Below, in pieces: positions 1 to 55,270 of a stretch of DNA of 64,000 nt (the first letter of the stretch is position 1; the number at the start of each line of letters is the position of its first letter). The stretch covers positions 10,540,001 to 10,604,000 of the forward strand of contig OZ365110.1 of the NCBI GenBank assembly GCA_977030845.1, read 5' to 3'. This DNA is from Fimbriosthenelais zetlandica (lineage: Eukaryota). The notes beneath the pieces are model-generated. The model searched no databases and had not been told where the DNA came from. It saw nothing but the letters and a program-made list of their open reading frames with translations. The position numbers were made by a program, and so were the translations under genes.

Positions 1-71
1 ATTAATTATATATTATTAAAGGGAAATGGTAGGGTAGCGCACGTAATATCATTTAGATGGGAAAAAAGCAT

Positions 72-153
72 AGGCCATGCCTAGATTCGAACCATCAACA
101 TGAATATTCCAAAACTCAGAAGACATGCACCCAAACCACTTGGCCATGCAGCC
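72..153 (-). mobile_element. Degenerate tRNA-like sequence (SINE head or tRNA pseudogene)
   Basis: Minus strand reads GGCTGCATGGCCAAGTGG...GATGGTTCGAATCTAGGCATGGCC: A-box-like TGGCCAAGTGG and B-box GGTTCGAATC at tRNA-like spacing. The cloverleaf is not clean. Confidence 0.5.
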
Positions 154-7131: not shown

Positions 7132-7506
7132 CGGTGTAACAATTTCACATTATCACCTCACATTATGTCCCTCCCAGGAATTTGAAAACGTTTTCAAATT
7201 CCCCCCAGGAATATAAAAACGTTTTCAAATTACCGAGGGGGGAATGTGAAAACTGTTCTCAGATTCATGCCCCCATTTTTACACCAATCCCCGCGGAATT
7301 TGAAAATTTTTCAAAATACCCTCCCCAACCCACCAGGAATTTCAAAAGGTTTTGAAATGTATAAAAGGGGGTTAATTGAAGGCAGAATGTTTGGGAAACA
7401 TCTAAAACAATCTCCTATGTTTTCATCTTCCTGCTGGGAGAATTTGAAAAGGTTTTCAAGTTCCTGGGGGTAACTTGAATAGAGGCGATTCCAAATTGTT
7501 ACACCG
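7132..7506. mobile_element. MITE-like element with 14-bp TIRs and internal palindromes
   Basis: CGGTGTAACAATTT (7132-7145) and AAATTGTTACACCG (7493-7506). Repeated internal palindromes such as GGAATTTGAAAACGTTTTCAAATTCC. No clear TSD. Confidence 0.7.
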
Positions 7507-43400: not shown

Positions 43401-45458
43401 ATGCGTCAGCGTGTTTCTTTGCTAAGAAAGCGATAAAAATACAAGCAAACAGAGGCATTCACAGTCTGTTCCAGGCATAAAATGTTCCTGTCGCAAATCT
43501 TGTGCAATTGCCAATAGCCCTATTGATTACTATTACTAGAATTTGTGATTCATTAGTTTTGTGAAGAATATTTAAAAACACGAGAAAGAATGCAGAACAT
43601 GTTCGTCCTATTCTGCACAAAGAATATGGGCTGGTGACACAGTAAAAGTGTGACAATTGCTTATATACAGGGTGTCTCAATACCAAACTTTATAGGACCA
43701 TCATTTTCAAACCATCTAGGAAAAAAGAAGGTACCAACAGAAAGTAGAAAGAAATTAGTTCAAAATGATACAATTATTACTGTCCTAGGGTCACGCATCA
43801 TCGAGCAGCATTGTTGTGCTGGGTACCTGCTAGTTTGCAAATGGTGGCCCTATAAAGTTGGGTACAGTTTTTATTGCGACACCCAGTTACTTGCAGGACA
43901 TGTTTCCTATAGACATGCTACATACCAATTCTGATATAGCCAGACTAACAGAAGTTACTCACGCGTTTTCATTTTTTCTTTTGCCTTTTGTTTTTCCTTT
44001 TGCTCTCGTACTACATCCAATATAAAGTCATGAGTTGTTTTTTTTTACTTTCTAACTTCAGCACTAGAACCATTTTTTCAGGATTTCAAAGAATAAATTG
44101 TTGATCTTTATAACAATTAACCGAATATGATCTTATTATATAGAATATAATTATAAACTTTTGCATAGAAAAAGGACAACTATGGTATATTATAATATAG
44201 AACTAACCAATGGGTAGTATGCGCTGAGGATAAATGGGAGGGCTTTGGCCCCAAGGTTTTAACCCCAATTAAGAATTCATTTTAATCTCATGGACAATAA
44301 ATATCAGGGATAGCATAAAATTAAGGATAACTTACGGGTGCGCAATTGTTTCTCTCTTGAATCCTTGAGTTTTTCAGCCACAGTCGGCTGGTGAGGTCGT
44401 GACTTCTTTTTGGATTCTCCCCAGGCTGCTAGTGGCTTGGGACTCCTGTCTTCATTAATAGGATGTGCCGGTGGATGAAATGATTCAGTGTCAGTACCAA
44501 CCAGGAAACAGTCTGGGCCTTTCAGTATTTCATCCAATGATCCTATCTAAAATAGAATAGAAGAGGTTGTTTTACTGAAATTACTGAAGTTTTTGCAGTA
44601 TGTTCACTCTAAGTTGATCCGAAACCAATTTGTTGTTGGTTGGAGTGGCAGGTCTGGGTAGGGTATATGATCCTGGGGCTTCCTGGGGCTGGATGTCCCT
44701 TGGGCTACGCCCTCGGGACACCCCTCCACCCTCAGGACATACCACCAGTCAGACCTGCCCTCGCTCAGTTCTATATATTTATGAATACTCACCTCTTTTC
44801 CCTTCTCTGTGAAGATTTTGCACGCCGGAATCCCAAAGCTTTCACCAATGTCATTGCTGAATTCAGGGAATTCTTGTGACGTTGCACGATTGAGAAGAAA
44901 TACCCTGCGAAACTCTGACTCTCCATTCCGGATGAATGTTAACTTTTTGGGTGGACGCTTCTTTGCATAGTACCCCGGATCAGAGCGCACACGGCCGACT
45001 TTCCTCGAAGCCGCTGCAGCTGGTTGAAGATAGCGATGTCGTCCACTCTTCAACTTCCCAGCATGCCAGGGTTTCAACCCACGTCTGGGAGACTCAGAGC
45101 TCTGTCCATATCTCTTACGACCTTCCATACAGAGGTAGGTCCGGTTTTGTTCGAACTGATTGAAGTCAGTGATGGTCCTCTTGCCACTGTGCGTCCGGAT
45201 GCCATTAACGGGGATTTTGACTCGCGCGCTGAGGTAATCATAGAGGGAGTCGAAATGTGGGAAACACTTTTGGTTGATGGAGACGATTCTCTCACAGGCA
45301 AAGGGGTTATTTGAGGGGATGAATTTCACCCGTCGGCTCACCTCCATGGCATGGGCAGCGTTGAAGGCATTTGCGATGGAGTAGAAATTGAGGTTGTCGG
45401 GGGCAGACTCAGTGGTGTCCTCCCCCATGGATGGGTCGGTGTCGTCAGTCTGAGACAT
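10414..45458 (-). CDS. RP1: RP1/RP1L1-like protein, long form: DCX-DCX, PLAT x2, beta-trefoil-like x2, Pro-rich linker, PLAT x2, micro-exon repeat array, PLAT; 3' end unresolved
   Basis: Core exons (minus): 45458-44793, 44546-44336, 40496-40339, 37626-37540, 37145-37013, 36675-36524, 36014-35936, 35056-34975, 34674-34584, 34091-33962, 33577-33474, 30299-30123, 29306-29091, 28356-28179, 27504-27304, 24406-24249, 23723-23631, 22919-22787, 21130-20982, 20592-20423, 19793-19738, [16 micro-exons], 12833-12777, 11302-11043, 10546-10414. All junctions are GT-AG and phase-consistent. DCX-like segments: RVKFIPSNNPF..FDSLYDYLSARV and KKLTFIRNGE..VFLLNR. PLAT motifs: YEVTTVTGDLWNAATDGNVYITIYGENGDTG, IGHD..GNGWFLD, RWLDEGEEDGKTVRE. 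About 1290 aa of core plus up to 275 aa from micro-exons. The symbol means a co-orthologue of RP1/RP1L1. Confidence 0.85.
11545..12569. mobile_element. Degenerate ~1-kb element with the termini of the AGCCTGGAGCACACTAATCC MITE family
   Basis: Left end AACCTGGAACACACTAATCCGATTCTCTATCC at 11545; right end GGATTAAAGAATCGGGTTAGTGTATTCGAGGCT at ~12537-12569. Confidence 0.5.
13672..13924. mobile_element. PIF/Harbinger-type MITE (copy 1)
   Basis: 27-bp TIR TGGCCCGTGTCCACGAGGCGACAAAAT with TAA on both sides. Nearly identical to 48130-48376. Confidence 0.9.
14227..19010 (-). CDS. Array of 16 symmetric (phase 1-1) micro-exons of the RP1-like gene, each encoding a GWxKVxxxLxxI-type peptide
   Basis: 19010-18945 GSEPNGWSMINEKLPEIINAKS; 18676-18614 EPNSWQKVAEHLPDILQGELK; 18221-18153 xKNQGWKMLRAAQALKSHLKPIT; 18036-17974 GNGWVSVNDHLKAIKALSLPK; 17798-17730 AKNQGWKMLRAALAVKSHLNPMK; 17398-17345 VRSGWELVSQNLTEINSQ; 16630-16586 GWQKANENLSAISKN; 16274-16230 GWSKVHDNLHNMLNR; 16015-15971 GWHKVTVNIPHISTS; 15795-15751 GWRKVSDNLTHINNT; 15635-15591 GWNKLSENLSQIQNG; 15145-15101 GWRKVGDNLTRINSA; 14963-14919 and 14714-14670 GWNKVARELPTMLNF; 14461-14417 GWIKVARELTTMLSF; 14262-14227 GWVKVNDKLPYI. 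Each has AG| and |GTRAG, a length divisible by 3 and no stop. Confidence 0.85.
14390..14985. repeat. ~250-bp tandem triplication, each unit carrying one micro-exon
   Basis: Units start near 14390, 14641 and 14891 (CCCTT(C/T)CTAAATGGACTA...). Units 2 and 3 are nearly identical. Confidence 0.9.
17640..18450. repeat. ~420-bp tandem duplication carrying two micro-exons; one duplicated exon has decayed
   Basis: 17700-18050 aligns with 18120-18445. The copy of the GNGWVSVNDHLK exon at 18428-18370 reads GNGRATVNDHFKAIIAFGY*, with an in-frame TGA and no donor. Confidence 0.8.
20061..20399. mobile_element. MITE family with TGTGAC(C)TGTTTTCATGAAA TIRs, TA-flanked
   Basis: TIR pair TGTGACCTGTTTTCATGAAA..GAGTCTAAAGTCGCA / TGCGACTTTAGACTC..CGTGAAAACACGTCACA. 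Other copies at 24070-24192, ~45810-46143 (partial) and 57795-58203 (TA on both sides). Confidence 0.8.
22171..22389. mobile_element. PIF/Harbinger-type MITE (AGCCTGGAGCACACTAATCCGATT family)
   Basis: TIR AGCCTGGAGCACACTAATCCGATTCTC...GAGAATCGGATTAGTGTGTTCCAGGCT, flanked by TGA/TAA. Other copies at ~41439-41570 and 51425-51606 (TAA on both sides). Confidence 0.85.
23095..23283. repeat. 22-bp minisatellite (~8 copies) with a palindromic core
   Basis: Unit CTGATCTGTCACAGATGTGTTG; the core ATCTGT-C-ACAGAT is self-complementary. Confidence 0.95.
23803..24017. mobile_element. hAT-like MITE (CAGGGTTCCCAG...CTGGGGACCCTG)
   Basis: CAGGG termini and repeated TTCCCTGA subterminal motifs. Related copies at 27558-28158 and 28664-28972. 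No clean 8-bp TSD. Confidence 0.7.
27558..28158. mobile_element. hAT-like MITE interrupted by a SINE
   Basis: CAGGGTTCTCAGCAG at 27558 and TTGGAACCCTG ending at 28158. Removing the SINE (~27821-28131) restores colinearity with 23803-24017. Confidence 0.75.
27827..28131 (+). mobile_element. Full-length tRNA-derived SINE
   Basis: GGGGAGTTAGCTCAGTTGGTTAGAGCG (A-box), GGTTCAATCCC (B-box), a hairpin-rich body and an A-tail after TTCTAACT. Four copies in the window. Confidence 0.9.
28664..28972. mobile_element. hAT-like MITE, third copy
   Basis: CAGGGTTCCAGCAGTTCATGAAAACAGAATTCCCTGAG...CGCTGGGAACCCTG. Confidence 0.75.
29417..29730 (+). mobile_element. Full-length tRNA-derived SINE, more diverged copy
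   Basis: Same head and body as 27827-28131. Flanked by TATATATTATATA / TATATATGATATA, a possible TSD. Confidence 0.9.
31072..31274. mobile_element. PIF/Harbinger-type MITE (AGCC..CTCCACTGCTGCGATT family)
   Basis: TIR AGCCGGGCCTCCACTGCTGCGATTTTGCTTGC...GCAAGCAAAATCGCAGCAGTGGAGACATGGCT with TAA on both sides. Second copy at 46272-46473. Confidence 0.85.
37692..38073. mobile_element. Palindromic non-autonomous element (TGTTGTACAA family)
   Basis: TGTTGTACAA...TTGTACAACA ends and internal CCCTCGCC/GGCGAGGG pairs; homologous to 10087-10309. Confidence 0.7.
39790..39975. repeat. Compound (GAAT)n/(ATCA)n microsatellite
   Basis: Runs of GAATGAATGAAT and ATCAATCAATCA are visible directly. Confidence 0.9.
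40279..40345. repeat. 27-bp tandem repeat that triplicates a 5' splice donor
   Basis: Minus strand TTTGAT|GTAAGTCTTGATCCATTTAAA repeated, giving GT donors at 40338, 40311 and 40284. Confidence 0.9.
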
Positions 45459-46473: not shown

Positions 46474-47016
46474 TTAGATTAACTGTACATTATACCTGGA
46501 ACCTGAAGGGACAAGTTTGATTGTTTCCAAACATGCAATAAAGTAATGGATATCACCAGGTCAAACTGACTAATAGTCAGGGTTTGGAACATTTGATATT
46601 GGTGTTTGATTTTGTAGCAGCAACAAGGGTCATTTTACATCCTGGAGAAAACATGTTACCGGCATGGCTACTTAGCCTACTCGTGGGTATTTCGATTCTC
46701 AGGAGGGACAGTGGAAGACATTTCTCTCCCCATCCCTCTCTCGCTATCTATCTGTCAATCTCTCAGTTTATCTGTCTGTCTACTCTTTCTATCTCTGTAT
46801 CTCCCTCCCTCACTCAACTCTCTCTCTCTTTTTCTGCCCATATTTAGAGACAACTTAAGCTCAGATCATTGAAGAATAGTATATACTGTTCCATTAAAAA
46901 AAGATGGAATTAGCCTAAACAGTACTATAGAATATGAATTATAAAACTCATATCTAGGCTATCGATAAAGAATTGTGGCAAGTAAATTCTAACTGAGGGA
47001 TAGCAAAAGAAGAAAA

Positions 47017-47055
47017 ATCATTTCTTATCAGTTTAGGAGGGCCCTGATAAGGGCC
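47017..47055 (-). terminator. Histone-type 3' stem-loop plus HDE-like element (copy 1)
   Basis: Sense strand: CCTAAAATAA-GGCCCT-TATC-AGGGCC-CTCCTAAACTGAT-AAGAAATGAT. The stem-loop is at 47055-47040, 43 nt after the stop codon. Confidence 0.75.
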
Positions 47056-47098
47056 TTATTTTAGGTAGGTAGAGACGCTAAAGTTGATGATGAGGTCA

Positions 47099-47422
47099 TT
47101 AGCCCTCCAGATCAGCGTCACAAACGTCCTGCCAATCGATGTCATACTTGTCTAGCAAATCATCCTCCATAGCGTCCAGTTGATCAGCGCTATCTTCTGC
47201 GTACTGTGTAAACATGTCCCTCACACCCTCCAGGGTGAGAATGCGCAGTCGCAGGTTGTAGCGCAGTGTTTTCCTGTCGTCGCGGAGGGCGCGCTGGTAA
47301 CGAGCGTTGATGGCCCGGATGTTGTTGTTCATCAGTATCAGCTGACGACAGACGCCGTTAAAACGACGTTCCATGACGCGCATCTTCTGGATCATTTCAA
47401 CAGCTCCCTGTGAAGTTTCCAT
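47099..47422 (-). CDS. Intronless 107-aa uncharacterised helical protein with a basic core and acidic tail (copy 1)
   Basis: TTGCCATGG start context; METSQGAVEMIQKMRVMERRFNGVCRQLILMNNNIRAINARYQRALRDDRKTLRYNLRLRILTLEGVRDMFTQYAEDSADQLDAMEDDLLDKYDIDWQDVCDADLEG*. GC content is high relative to the flanks, and the ORF is intact in a second copy. Confidence 0.8.
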   Translation of the reverse strand: METSQGAVEMIQKMRVMERRFNGVCRQLILMNNNIRAINARYQRALRDDRKTLRYNLRLRILTLEGVRDMFTQYAEDSADQLDAMEDDLLDKYDIDWQDVCDADLEG

Positions 47423-47685
47423 GGCAAATTTTGTTGGGTTTGAGACAAGGTGAAAAAGAAAAGGTTCTGACAATGTCAATGAGACCTGTTTCTTCTTGGT
47501 AACTTCAATGTGGAACTGAACGTGGAAGTGGGAGGTTTATTTCTCTTTACTGATGGAAGAATGTAATGGAGTAGAAGGCAGTAGAATATTCTGTAATATA
47601 GATGATAGTAGAATATAATTGATTGCTGGTTGTTGTTTGCTGATTAAGCAGAAGACAAGTTCTGTCTGCTAACCACATTGTCTGG

Positions 47686-47822
47686 TGTATTTATATGCCC
47701 CGAGGTGTCTCCCTCGTCACTCAGGTGAACGTCGCGCGAATCATTGACACCTGAGATGTCATGTGTCAAAATCACAATCTGCGATTAGCCTCAGTGTTAA
47801 AATGTCCAGATCGCGCGAACGT
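47686..47822 (-). promoter_or_regulatory. TATA box and conserved upstream motifs of small-ORF copy 1
   Basis: TATAAATA on the minus strand (47695-47688). TCGCGCGA at ~47736 and ~47811. The block is conserved in copy 2. Confidence 0.6.
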
Positions 47823-48129
47823 CGCTACAGTATGTCTTTCACACCTGCTGATATTAGTGAGTAGCTTGAGCAATGAGTAGACTTGTCACTTTTTGCGTGG
47901 CGGCCGGCTAATACCGGAAATTACAGACAGCAATTATTGTTGACGTTTTAAGGAATCACCTATATTTCCGCTTCCTGTTCTTCATCAGTTTTCCATGTAT
48001 GAGGCCTCATAGGAAGGTATACACAAGGACTGCGATATAAATAACATGGCTGATTTAATGGACTTCCCTTTACACTATGAGAAGAACTTAAGATATGTCA
48101 TCCACTGAATAGTGGAAAGGCGACATTTA

Positions 48130-49210: not shown

Positions 49211-51109
49211 GTTGGCTTGGAAGTTGGAACTCGATATTACCCTCTTAAGGATTTCCGGCGAGAACTATACACCATCAACAGTATATTTTCGGCTTATTCA
49301 GGTAGAGCAAGGCCTAGCAATATAAGAAACCAGAAATTGCAAACCTTGATCGCAAATAGTATGTTTTGTTCCCAAAGCCACAGGTAAACTTATGTGAGAG
49401 TTTACTATCGCTTTGCGATGCTACTGTATCCTCTATAAAGAAGTAGATTATAAAAACTTTGCATCGGTGTTCACATGTTTATGCTGTGAAACTTTTTATA
49501 ATATGATTTTCTATTTTCAAAAATAAAAAATCCTTACGTTTATTATCTTATTATCTCGTAGAACATCAAATCGCAGGAAATTCCTACGTAATTTTCTACG
49601 AGCTCTCGCTGGGCCTCTAACAACTGAAATGCCGCGAGCGAAAAAATGCTGCGAGGGGTGTCATATAATTACTGGGGGATGTTCCATTAGTTCCAACGAA
49701 ACAAGTGATGTGCAAGTGGTAGTCAGCTAGCACTCGTTGGACTGCTCGCAGAATTTTCTCTGCGATTTTATTTTCTACTAGACTTGGCCAGAGAGCGCTC
49801 GCTGAAGTTATGCAACGGGGTCGTTGAAGTCTTTCTGAGAAAGGCTGGGTTTTGGGCATCGACCGGCAGCCCAGAGCACTGTAGGCCTACATGTGCATTC
49901 TATGTAGGCGTCCATTTTTCCATAGATCACCTACAAAAGAGCACTATATAGCTCAGCTGACAGCATGTAGCTTACATCGTATTAAATACAATGGATGGGA
50001 AGCCATTGTTAGTACCTATTATATTCTGCATAATACCGGTACCACATGAACTCCGTTCCACGTGCTAATTGGAAATAATTTTAAGGAAAATTTGTTTGCG
50101 GATATTTCAATAAATGGACGGCCATGATAACGCCTTCTATCTAAAGCCTAATTAACTCTAGTAATTGGCTTAATGTTCGAGATCGCATATCACGAACATT
50201 GACAATAAGTGTCCTACCTGCAGACGAGCCTAATTGGTTTAGGCATATAGAAATTCATATGTGTATAAAGGTTGGAGCGGGGGATGGAGAATGGTGGTGC
50301 ACTATTCCACATCGAGTGTAGGCCTACTTCTCTCGTGCCGTGCAAAGATGACGCTGTGAAAATCACTTTTCTGCAGCATCTCTCCGCCAGAACATCCAAT
50401 ATAGAGCTCACCTCTCTGCCAAATACGTATATAATCATACAGGCTCTGGACCTACAACAGGTAACGTTTACTTCTATTCTCTTCTTTTACTCCACTGTCT
50501 GATGAAATAATTGTATAAATTCAGACAAAAAGGTTCCGTAATATTATGTAATCCAACTTTTACAGAAATATTTAAGCACAGTTTTGTCGGGTTGGCATAA
50601 ATTTTTCTTAGAATTGATAAAAAGTGAAAAAGGAGAGATACTGTTCGAAAGACTCATGCCAGGATGTTTTTTTCTAGGTCACAAAGACATTCGATCGCTA
50701 TTTTTGCTGTTTCAGCCAAGCCCGTTTTGGGAATTTCTTTTTGAACATATAAATTTATTCAGGAGGATTGCATCACAATAAAAACACATGACAAGTCAAA
50801 ATCAGGACCAAGGTCCTGATGTTCCTTTGGCTTCCTGACCAAAAATAAAATTTGCGCGGTAACTGACTAAATTAACATTTAAATTTAAATTAACATTTAA
50901 CATCTAAATTTAATGATATAAGAATGCACTTTAATGCATGAAATTAGAATATAATTGTCATAATATGTCGTTATTATTATAACATGTAATCTAGCACATA
51001 CATGTATTCTATTCCAGGAGTAGCCCTAATTTCTTATTCAATCTAATACTAGATTTTTAATGTTTACAGGGAAAGACAAGTGTAGGCATAGCCTATACCT
51101 GCAGTGAAG

Positions 51110-53016
51110 ATGAACAGTACAAGTAATGGTAGTAACGTTGGGGACACTGAGCTATCCGTGGCTGATATGGTCATTGAATCGTGTGTATTATCTACCATTA
51201 TTCTGGTGGCTTTATTAGGTAATGGTTTGATCCTTTCCTATAACATCCTCACCAAGAGAAGAAACTTGTTGAACCCAATTGACATCCTCATACTCAATTC
51301 AGCCCTGGCCGATTTTATCGCCACTCTAAGCGTATACCCTGCTCAGGTAAGATTTATTCAATAATAGGTTTGAAGATTGTGAGTATACAGTCATGGACAT
51401 GTATCATTAAGTTAACATCAGTAAAGCCTGGAGCACACTAATCCGATTCTCCATCCAGTTCGATCCGATAGCTGTCCCAAACTATATTTCTATTCACGCC
51501 AAATGCTTGTGATTTGAAAAGACCATTACACTCATGTTAGGCGAACCATTGACGAAATATCAATCATTGGATATCAATAGAAATGGGGATTAGTGTGTTC
51601 TAGGCTTAAGTCTGCACATAGTGATGTTAAGGACATAACCGTTTCATTTTAATATAGATGTATGGGGTACTGATGCAGTCGTGGAAGTTGGGTGAGTTGA
51701 GCTGTCGAATTGTCTACATGATTGGATTTGAGAGCATCGCCACTTCTGTGAATTCCAATTTCTTGATCAGCATCTTTTGCTTGTACACTTGCATTCTTCG
51801 ACCTCAAGCCGTCATCCGTGTAAAACACGCGCTCTATCTGACCATCGCGTTATGGCCTTATACATTTTTTTTGGCACACCACAGTGTCCTTACTGGGCAT
51901 GTTGATATTGCATTTGATGACCAGATCATGTATCTTTGCTGGGCCGGTCGCGACAAGAACTTTCACAGGCTTTTATTACAGTCAGTATTGCCCGTAGGTT
52001 ATATACCAATAATCCTCACTTGTGTCACCTATGTTATAATTTTTGTTAAGATAAAATCGCTGACTTTTCACATGAACCAGGGAACTAATGTGAAGTTAGC
52101 TCACTGTACTCTGGGTATTATTGTACTCTATATGATTTGTTACATGCCAAGCTTGATTCTCAAACTGTCAGGTTTGGACAGACTTTCACAAGTTTGGGTC
52201 AAAATACTTCGATATTCGCAGTATCTTCTCTATTCAAATGCTGCTTGGAATCCTCTCTACTATCTCTACAGGATGAATTATTTATTCCCTCCATGGGTGA
52301 GGAATAGTTTAACGAGAAATGTGGTATCGGTGGCTTATGGAACAAATGAAGCGCTTGGTGTGAATAGCCAGCCAGGAGGCAGCAGGTCTGTAACAGGGGA
52401 AGGGGTAGAGGGCATGGGTGTGACAGGTATCTCATGTATGACATGTAGACCTACTCTGACAGGTATTTCAGGTATGATAGGTAGACCTGCTCTGACAGGT
52501 ATTTCAGGTATGACAGGTAGATCTGCTGTGACAGGCATGTCAGGTATGACAGGTAGATCTGCTGTGACAGGCATTTCAGGTTTGACAGGTAGATCTGCTG
52601 TGACAGGCATTTCAGGTTTGACAGGTAGATCTGCTGTGACAGGAATCTCAGGTGTAACAGGTAGATCTGCTGTAACATGCATCTCGGGTATGTCACATAC
52701 ACCGGCTGTGACAGGCATCTCAGTTATGACAGGTAGACCGGCTGTGACAGGAATATCAGGTATGACAGGTAGACCTGCTGTGACAGGCATCTCAGGTATG
52801 GCAGGTAGATCTGATGTGACAGGCATCTCAGGTATGGCAGGTATAACTGATGTGACAGGTATCTCTAGTACTAGTGGTAGACCTCATGTGACAGGTATCT
52901 CAGATACGACAGGGATCTCGGTTTTGACAGGTAAGCCAGATGTACCTGGTGCAATTGGTGTTAAGGCAGGCGTGCAGCATATAATGGTCAAAGAATTAAT
53001 AAAGTCGGATGAATAG
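51110..53016 (+). CDS. Class A (rhodopsin-like) orphan GPCR, 2 coding exons, 531 aa, long repetitive C-tail
   Basis: Exons 51110-51346 (|GTAAG) and 51658-53016 (TATAG|), phase 0. N-terminal NST/NGS sequons; TM1 LLGNGLIL, TM2 NSALADF, TM4 LWPY, TM6 ICYMP, TM7 NAAWNPLYY. No DRY motif. An upstream acceptor ending at 51069 implies a further 5' exon. Confidence 0.88.
51425..51606. mobile_element. PIF/Harbinger-type MITE in the GPCR intron
   Basis: AGCCTGGAGCACACTAATCC...GGATTAGTGTGTTCTAGGCT with TAA on both sides. Confidence 0.85.
52420..52935 (+). repeat. Coding 36-bp minisatellite (TGISGMTGRSAV, ~14 units) in the GPCR C-tail
   Basis: Visible in the DNA (GTGACAGGCATCTCAGGTATGACAGGTAGATCTGCT) and in the translation. 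Confidence 0.95.
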
Positions 53017-53789
53017 AGTAAGATGACCAGGGGAAAGTTATTTTTCAAAATAGACAATGTAGTGGCGAAATAGTAAAAGAAGTTAAGATACTGGGTAACA
53101 TAATTATTAAATATTAGGTAAATTGAGCAAAACGTATACAGTGCATGCTGTGATTAAATCGTCTATAAACCGACCAAGAGCCTAGCCTATAAGGAGGACA
53201 TAAGGATGTTGACATCGCATTGATTTCCCCCAACAGTCTCCTGGTTTCGGCAAGAGAGGAGGCAAATGTTTTGTGTTGTGAGGTTTCTTAGGGTTTATGT
53301 TGCAGGAAACTTTTACAATAAAATCTTTACATGGTCTGACCATGTCAAGATTTATAAATAATTTTCTGAATACTATATATTTCTAAATACAATAGGGTCT
53401 ACATAATTATACTGGGTATCTTCTGACATATTATGTAATGTTAATCATTATTAAATAGATATTATGATAACTATACTTATGACACCAGCAGGGATAAAAG
53501 TTAAGCTATAGCTATGGCATATAGATCATATCTCAGGTATCTCAGGTTTAAATTATAGTCAGTCTTTTTGTTAAGATATCTCAGTTAATCCAGATAATCT
53601 CCAGTACAATGCAATGATTAAATAGAAGTTAAATCGACGTGACATATTGTAAAATTTGTTATTAGTAAACGGAACTTTGGATATATTGAAACATAATTGG
53701 AAGTCTGTGTTAATTATAGCAAGGATAGTAGAGTTACTATTGTAAATAGAGTATCCTTGATTATAGTACGTAATCAGTATTAATAAAGT

Positions 53790-54000
53790 ATGACAGGTAT
53801 CTCATGAGTCTTAGTCGATGACCTGCTGTGACAGACATTTCATGTATTGCTGGAGGACCTACTGTGACAGGTATTTCAAGTATTACTGGAAGACCAGCTG
53901 TGACAGGTATCTCAGGTATTACTGGAAGACTTGATGTGACAGGTACGTATCTCAGTTATTACTGGGAGACCAGCTGTGACAGGTATCTCAGGCATTACAA
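53790..54000 (+). repeat. Degenerate non-coding second array of the 36-bp GPCR-tail repeat (~5 units)
   Basis: GCTGTGACAGGTATCTCAGGTATTACTGGAAGA units, with a stop and a 4-bp frameshift. Confidence 0.8.
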
Positions 54001-54431
54001 ATAGGCTTGGCACCATTATACACAAGAAGGCATAATTTGTTACTCATTCACAGAATGTAAAATATTGTCAAAATATTGTGATAAATATGTAACAGTATTA
54101 TTATGTAACAGTAATACTAGATAGATTATTAGATTTTGAGACAGAACTTAAGGCCCATATTCTGAGATCTGTAATTTTAGTTAGAGATCTCAGATTCTAA
54201 AAAGGTCAATCGCTAACCACTGTTGCAACGCGCTGGGTCCTTCCTATATATTATTTCGCCCAATCAGTTTCAATTCATTGTACCGATGTTCTGATGGTGT
54301 ACCCCATGTACCCAGCCTATGATGTATGACTGATTTTGTGAACAATTGGTAATGAAATAAAAAGAAGGAGAATTTAAAAAAAAATATATATATAGTTGCC
54401 TTGGGTAATTATGTATTTCAAAACACGAAAG

Positions 54432-54470
54432 ATCATTCCTTGTCAGTGAAGGAGGGCCCTGATAAGGGCC
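54432..54470 (-). terminator. Histone-type 3' stem-loop plus HDE-like element (copy 2)
   Basis: Sense strand: CCTAAACAAAAA-GGCCCT-TATC-AGGGCC-CTCCTTCACTGA-CAAGGAATGAT. The stem-loop is at 54470-54455, 51 nt after the stop codon. Confidence 0.75.
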
Positions 54471-54521
54471 TTTTTGTTTAGGTAGGTAGTGACGCAACAG
54501 CTACAGTTTGTGACGAGGTCA

Positions 54522-54845
54522 TCAACCCTCCAGATCAGCGTCACAAACGTCCTGCCAGTCGATGTCATACTTGTCTAGCAGATCGTCCTCCATAGCGTCC
54601 AGTTGATCAGCGCTATTTTCTGCATACTGTGTAAACATGTCCCTCACACCCTCCAGGGTGAGAATGCGCAGTCGCAGGTTGTAGCGCAGTGTTTTTCTGT
54701 CGTCGCGGAGGGCGCGCTGGTAACGAGCGTTGATGGCCCGGATGTTGTTGTTCATCAGTATCAGCTGACGACAGACGCGGTTAAAACGACGTTCCATGAC
54801 GTGCATCTTCTGGATCATTTTAACAGCTCCCTGTGAAGATTCCAT
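54522..54845 (-). CDS. Intronless 107-aa uncharacterised helical protein (copy 2)
   Basis: About 12 nt differences from copy 1 over 324 nt by manual alignment; 5 are amino-acid changes and all lie outside the central RQLIL...TQYAE core. Confidence 0.8.
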   Translation of the reverse strand: MESSQGAVKMIQKMHVMERRFNRVCRQLILMNNNIRAINARYQRALRDDRKTLRYNLRLRILTLEGVRDMFTQYAENSADQLDAMEDDLLDKYDIDWQDVCDADLEG

Positions 54846-55122
54846 GGCAACTTCTGATAGGTTTGAGACAAGGTGCAAAAGAAAAGATTCTAGGAAATGA
54901 AAATCTCAATGAGAGTTTCTTCTGGGTCAATTCAAACCTAATTGTCAATGTGGTAGTGGGAGGATTCTGTCTCTTTGCTGATCCAAGAATGTAATGGCGT
55001 AGAAGGCAGTAGAATATTTTGTTATAGAGTAGAATATGACTAATTATTGGTTGTTGTAATGTTTGCTGATTGAGCAGCCGTTGAGCAGAAGACAAGTTCT
55101 GTCTGCTAACCACATTGTCTGG

Positions 55123-55270
55123 TGTATTTATATGCCACAAGGTGACGCCCTCGTCACTCAGGCGGATGTCGCGCGAATGATTAACACATGTGATGTCAAG
55201 ATCACACTCTCTCAATTTTAGCGATTAGTCTCAGTGATGAACAGACTTGATGGTCGTCGCGCGACCGTCA
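55123..55270 (-). promoter_or_regulatory. TATA box and conserved upstream motifs of small-ORF copy 2
   Basis: TATAAATA on the minus strand (55132-55125). The CCCTCGTCACTCAGG..GTCGCGCGAAT block is shared with copy 1. Confidence 0.6.

Follow-up and report, generated by a model that had tools for sequence, protein, structure and literature searches.

The locus of Fimbriosthenelais zetlandica analysed here raises the question of whether genes that do not encode histones may have their mRNAs ended in the manner of histone mRNAs. The stretch under study (64 kb, hereafter the window) carries two copies of a small protein-coding gene, each followed by a histone-type hairpin. Histone mRNAs are described as the only cellular mRNAs with a stem-loop end (PMC4604434). 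Their pathway, as characterized by Marzluff and colleagues, comprises binding of SLBP, cleavage directed by U7 snRNP and the absence of poly(A) (PMC4604434, PMC5435866), and cross-linking of SLBP in human cells revealed no bona fide target other than histone mRNAs (PMC4604434). The most recent evolutionary survey was confined to the regions that follow histone coding sequences (10.64898/2026.10.14.759114), so a case like the present family could not surface in it. No report of a non-histone gene family with this stem-loop was found in the open-access literature; an earlier description elsewhere is possible.

Organization of the two gene units

Two similar units of about 0.8 kb were found on the minus strand, copy A at 47010-47824 and copy B at 54425-55270, their bounds being given by the alignment of one copy with the other; outside the bounds of copy B similarity is about 50%. 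A tblastn search showed exactly two copies of the gene in the 64-kb window. They are spaced by about 7.42 kb, and a gene for a rhodopsin-type GPCR (51104-53016, plus strand; Pfam 7tm_1) is located between them, in agreement with an earlier note on this DNA, which had described units of about 800 bp lying 7.4 kb apart and bracketing the GPCR. The order of elements is the same in both units: two TCGCGCGA palindromes, a TATA box, a leader, an open reading frame (ORF), a 3' UTR, the hairpin and a purine-rich tract.

The TCGCGCGA palindrome occurs four times in 64 kb, against 0.14 occurrences expected, and all four are in these two promoters, two in each. The distal palindromes occupy 55257-55264 in copy B, 132 nt upstream of the TATA box, and 47811-47818 in copy A; the proximal ones, at 55169-55176 in copy B and 47732-47739 in copy A, are both 44 nt upstream of the TATA box. 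Its distribution makes the palindrome a candidate regulatory site. A likeness to cell-cycle promoter elements would be no more than a possible lead: of short E2F-type motif strings, only the substrings CGCGCG and TTCGCGC matched. The TATA boxes (TATAAAT at 55126-55132 in copy B; 47689-47695 in copy A; both on the minus strand) are situated within a 50-nt block that is common to the two copies and identical between them.

The leader is about 250 nt long in both units. The putative 5' UTR of copy B (54846-55105, minus strand), whose start is placed about 27 nt past the TATA box, contains no ATG; the sole ATG upstream of the ORF, at +17 from the TATA box, probably precedes the start site. The ORF, located on the minus strand at 47099-47422 in copy A (107 codons and TAA) and at 54522-54845 in copy B (107 codons and TGA), is intact and intronless in both copies, and its start context is GCCATGG. 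Longer TTG-started ORFs (47479, 54878) were rejected because the first ATG is backed by the family alignment. GC3 of the coding region is 63%, versus 38% GC for the window. The stop codon of copy B is followed by a 3' UTR spacer of 51 nt (54471-54521, minus strand), and AATAAA was not found near either copy.

Other features of the window were also annotated. The C-terminal tail of the GPCR is encoded by about 20 tandem 18/36-nt repeats (52308-52997), the repeat encoding a Gly/Ser/Thr-rich unit of 12 residues with a weak collagen-like Pfam match; further copies of this repeat are present at 53784-53981, about 0.8 kb beyond the GPCR stop codon. An ORF of 284 codons at 44604-45458 (minus strand) contains a doublecortin (DCX) domain (E = 1.7e-8), and no relative of its 284-residue product was found in a word-indexed search of 5.8 billion proteins. 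A palindromic hairpin at 7163-7247, probably representing a small transposon of the inverted-repeat kind, matches MITE-derived microRNA families below threshold on both strands (MIR1120, 39 vs 86 bits). Direct repeats that are short, dispersed and unrelated to the gene units, with 81-89% identity, were found at 41441-41542/51427-51528, 45867-45928/57906-57967 and 57725-57780/58392-58447; they are possibly interspersed repeats, and one copy falls in the intron region of the GPCR. No tRNAs were found in the window.

Divergence of the copies and selection on the protein

Identity between copies A and B is 77% upstream of the TATA box, 86% in the leader, 96.6% in the coding sequence (CDS), 85% in the 3' UTR and 100% in the hairpin. 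In the 30 nt past the hairpin it is 80%, after which it falls to about 50%, that is, to background, similarity ending about 40 nt past the hairpin. The CDS is thus less divergent than its flanks (96.6% identity versus about 85% in the UTRs; Fisher p = 3e-6 for the CDS against the leader). The indels that had been noticed in the 5' leader amount to 34 gap columns in 301. The CDS differences comprise five replacements, six silent changes and the change of stop codon TAA/TGA, close to the earlier estimate of about seven silent and five replacement changes, and the invariant central core described at that time corresponds to residues 24-76, which are identical.

For the CDS, dN is 0.020 and dS is 0.092, with a dN/dS ratio of 0.22. 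Non-synonymous sites are conserved far above the UTRs (p = 6e-8); for synonymous sites, no significant difference to the UTRs was seen. The protein is under purifying selection. Given the ATG-free leader and the intact, constrained ORF, both copies look like working genes. The identity gradient has its maximum in the CDS and fades out shortly beyond the regulatory elements. Its shape suggests selection together with gene conversion, as in other concerted multigene families, and the two copies probably owe their likeness to both, with conversion centred on the CDS.

Histone-type hairpin in the window

The 16-nt hairpin GGCCCTTATCAGGGCC, with a 6-bp stem and a 4-nt loop, is located on the minus strand at 47040-47055 in copy A and 54455-54470 in copy B. 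The statement that it is identical in both copies is correct, and these are its only two matches in 64 kb, against 0.02 expected. On the sense strand it follows the stop codon after 43 nt (copy A) or 51 nt (copy B), the same values as had been read from the sequence earlier.

The top Rfam match on the coding strand is RF00032, the histone 3' UTR stem-loop, with 24.9 bits for copy B (over 54429-54475) and 24.1 bits for copy A (over 47014-47060). In scans of 300 nt the E-value is 5.6e-5 for copy B and 1.1e-4 for copy A; over the whole window it is 0.012 and 0.023, respectively. Both hairpins score under the curated Rfam gathering threshold of 34 bits, and for this reason a default Rfam scan of the window returned no family at threshold. 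The window hairpin folds as predicted; its stem geometry, its A-rich 5' flank and the invariant positions of its stem and loop agree with RF00032, whereas its second loop base and 3' flank deviate from the model in both copies, and, unlike the known element, it stands on a non-histone ORF. An antisense or plus-strand role was rejected, since the Rfam match is on the minus strand only.

Conservation of the hairpin among relatives

DNA of twelve relatives from eight other sources (nine with the window) was searched for a histone-type hairpin on the sense strand after the stop codon. One such hairpin was present 6-129 nt past the stop in 10 of the 12 relatives, belonging to six other sources, including the annelid Lamellibrachia satsuma. 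Four of these genes, all obtained in a single set of sequencing runs and with 44-72% protein identity to that of the window, carry the hairpin at 90 nt (P0001, 21.3 bits with RF00032), 129 nt (P0002, 30.5 bits), 6 nt (P0004) and 64 nt (P0006, 25.3 bits) past the stop. P0004 has two hairpins in tandem (L006:1830-1845 and 1862-1877), the first of which starts 6 nt past the stop, and the better one scores 27.1 bits. The hairpin is 46 nt past the stop in P0011 (32.9 bits), 29 nt in P0024 of L. satsuma (24.6 bits) and 41 nt in each of four clustered P0178-type copies (22.9-38.0 bits), which are 33% identical to the window protein. Over all hairpin-bearing relatives, identity to the window protein is 33-72% and the RF00032 score is 21.3-38.0 bits, just one hairpin, of the P0178 type, exceeding the curated 34 bits; RF00032 was the top Rfam match in every stem-loop-bearing locus scanned for the element.

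A small covariance model, R1, was built from 13 family hairpins. It gives 35.3 bits for copy B and 34.5 bits for copy A, and it also recognizes hairpins outside its training set, namely those of P0175 (23 nt past the stop, 35.7 bits) and P0151 (48 nt past the stop, 23.2 bits). Scanning the rest of the window with R1 revealed no further hairpin, and no other strong hairpin was found in the 12-20 kb flanks of relatives (L013, L014, L016, L017), so that hairpins and family genes are paired one to one in flanks up to 20 kb. A weak orphan hairpin (L014:17620-17650; 20.9 bits with R1) lies in the largest gap of the four-copy cluster, with no family ORF detectable beside it, and may be the remnant of a decayed copy.

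All stem cells of the 13 hairpins (78/78) are standard pairs, and compensatory changes were found in two of the six pairs; the stem of P0011 differs from that of the window by a compensatory pair. At stem pairs 5 and 6 neither base varies among the 13 hairpins, nor does the 5' G at stem pairs 1 and 2 or base 3 of the loop; base 1 of the loop is shared by 12 of them. It is to these invariant positions that the Histone3 model gives most weight. The hairpin is therefore conserved, with covariation, across the family. Because the relatives keep it, the whole protein family appears to use the mRNA ending and timing otherwise specific to histones.

These data also bear on a simpler account of the window pair, namely that its hairpins are identical owing to recent duplication or gene conversion, without any selection on the RNA. 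At 15% UTR divergence, 16 unchanged bases would be expected by chance with p of about 0.07, and an identity gradient topping in the CDS is what conversion would give; selection on the hairpin is therefore not proven by the window pair taken by itself. The proof comes from the comparison across species, since the hairpin is kept in relatives with only 33-72% protein identity and unalignable UTRs, and its stem shows compensatory pairs, which leaves this account with almost no credibility. The proposal of the earlier note that selection acts on both the protein and the RNA element is accordingly borne out, on the side of the protein by the dN/dS ratio and on the side of the RNA by the retention of the hairpin with compensatory stem changes.

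Two members of the family, P0005 and the 325-residue P0017, have no hairpin. In P0005, AATAAA overlaps the stop codon, and in P0017, ATTAAA-type hexamers are present downstream (L007:1440-1470; L015:6978-7100). By analogy with canonical and variant histones, the hairpin-less members suggest that two expression classes may exist in one family, P0005 and P0017 with their poly(A)-signal-like hexamers being comparable to the polyadenylated, replication-independent histone variants.

Purine-rich tract downstream of the hairpin

The HDE-like tract reported earlier for copy B, for which a likeness to the sea-urchin HDE had been proposed, is indeed present, as CAAGGAATGA at 54432-54441 (minus strand), and its counterpart in copy A is TAAGAAATGA at 47017-47026 (minus strand); both are purine-rich and occupy +14 to +23 after the stem, which is the distance expected of such an element. 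Within 80 nt, the 10-mer richest in purines begins at +8 to +14 in 13 of the 14 family copies that carry the hairpin, the block extending from +8 to +25. The purine share is 0.66 at +11..26 versus 0.41 at +31..80 (p = 0.0015, or 0.004 when each lineage is represented by a single copy). A downstream block is common to four paralogues obtained in a single set of sequencing runs, while the 40 nt before their hairpins are not alignable. A species-specific U7 pairing site would look like this, and the shared block may be a candidate for one. The tract of copy B is without simple AAA/AAGA marks, which served as the operational HDE criterion in one survey (10.64898/2026.10.14.759114).

A hairpin of this kind could also be conserved for stability, localisation, translation or the binding of another protein, with the mRNA polyadenylated farther downstream. 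This would be compatible with the scores of the window copies under the Rfam threshold, with their atypical 3' flank and with the poly(A) signals that some relatives appear to use. We nevertheless regard it as unlikely: the invariant positions are the heaviest of the Histone3 model and RF00032 is the top match at all stem-loop-bearing loci scanned, the purine-rich tract stands at a fixed distance, and the similarity of copies A and B stops about 40 nt past the hairpin, with no conserved poly(A) signal beyond.

The protein and its family

No Pfam family was detected above noise for the two window proteins or for 72 family members. Relatives are represented by 612 clusters at E<=1e-3 and 116 clusters at E<=1e-10 (HMMER, 1.84 billion cluster representatives), mostly of 90-200 residues, and the sole names given to them by any source are those of hypothetical proteins of L. 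satsuma. A scan of JGI metagenomes with a smaller family profile yielded no confirmed locus. Among 72 aligned members, seven positions are conserved at the level of >=90%: F21, R41, A45, R58, E65, R68 and Y74 (window numbering).

The AlphaFold model obtained for copy B with the family alignment (pLDDT 94.2) contains a pair of long antiparallel helices (residues 2-48 and 51-93) and a third, short one; as modelled, the protein is a helical hairpin and not a histone fold. The basic body (residues 1-70) has a pI of ~11, and the acidic tail (residues 71-107) one of ~4. Speculatively, the conserved arginines of the basic hairpin and the acidic tail might equip the protein to bind nucleic acids or histones. 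The profile search against PDB returned just coiled-coil noise, and Foldseek searches against PDB and BFVD gave generic hairpins, none at E <0.06. TM-scores of 0.7-0.8 to the model were obtained for the PspA/Vipp1/ESCRT-III core, the STAT coiled-coil and sperm microtubule inner proteins; for all of these generic helical hairpins E is >=0.24 and identity is 9-17%, with no PDB profile link, so that the likeness is one of shape and no evidence of kinship or shared function.

One might see in the protein a histone, or a chromatin protein of histone type, that has diverged very far, with a hairpin inherited from an ancestral histone gene. The architecture of the gene is like that of histone genes, and the body of the protein is basic, with conserved arginines. 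The confident helical model is at odds with this origin, the sequence and fold searches of PDB give generic hairpins only, and the Histone family of Pfam gave no match up to E = 1 with the window proteins and none up to E = 0.1 with the 72 members. We therefore consider descent from a histone very improbable.

Groups of these genes occur in other genomes. P0009-type genes form head-to-tail arrays with a period of 1.84 kb and 8-10 or more copies on each of two contigs (ERZ26222911), some copies encoding 186 residues instead of 160, and L014 contains four units of about 0.7 kb, 2.1-4.0 kb apart. Of the small dispersed or clustered family that had been surmised from the window, such clusters and tandem arrays support the clustered form. 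ORFs are uninterrupted in all loci, and TATA boxes are found 70-290 nt upstream of the ATG in most of them.

The same note had added that the units were possibly of mobile or viral origin, and they might accordingly be cargo of a mobile element or virus-derived, spread by transposition and not by virtue of a cellular function. The duplicated segment is short, self-contained and sharply bounded, and copy number is high in some genomes. This part of the earlier suggestion found no support. No relative was found in IMG/VR with either a single protein or a nine-sequence profile, BFVD gave no match at E<0.06, and PHROGs gave one noise-level match. No inverted repeats of >=40 nt were detected at the ends of the units. 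Domains of transposase, integrase, reverse transcriptase or capsid proteins were not found in the ten other longest ORFs of the window (>=100 aa) that were scanned, nor in the Pfam record of the genes called near relatives. The unit consists of a promoter, one ORF and a 3' signal only, and purifying selection and deep conservation fit a host gene, which makes a mobile or viral origin highly doubtful.

Proposed mode of expression

The two units are probably paralogues within a widespread invertebrate family of cellular, intronless genes, the mRNAs of which receive their 3' ends through the SLBP/U7 pathway of histones. The replication-dependent histone genes of animals (H1, H2A, H2B, H3 and H4) share with them the absence of introns, the TATA promoter, the short 3' UTR, the 6-bp/4-nt stem-loop with a purine-rich tract after it, the arrangement of many copies in clusters or tandem arrays, and a GC-rich coding region in an AT-rich genome. 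They differ from the present family, the product of which is a helical hairpin with an acidic tail and the leader of which is about 250 nt long. No histone gene was found in the window or in the flanks of relatives.

We infer processing by SLBP and U7, coupling to the cell cycle and a possible link to chromatin. According to this scheme, the hairpin would be bound by SLBP, and U7 snRNP would pair with the downstream tract, so that the transcript is cut a few nucleotides beyond the stem. The resulting mRNA, about 650 nt long, would have the hairpin at its end and no poly(A), and its abundance and translation would therefore track SLBP, that is, S phase or maternal stores.

A broader interpretation, to which we give somewhat less than even weight, is that of an ancient invertebrate non-histone family with mRNAs made and timed by the SLBP/U7 pathway, the first non-histone clients of that pathway. 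The family might have stayed unnamed in part since hairpin-ended mRNAs drop out of poly(A)-selected transcriptomes, and its protein might be required when DNA is replicated or during the early cleavage divisions, acting, for instance, together with new chromatin. If this is true, histone mRNAs are not the only clients of the stem-loop pathway in some animals, genes of this kind escape annotation that relies on poly(A), and the family points to an unstudied protein produced in step with DNA synthesis.
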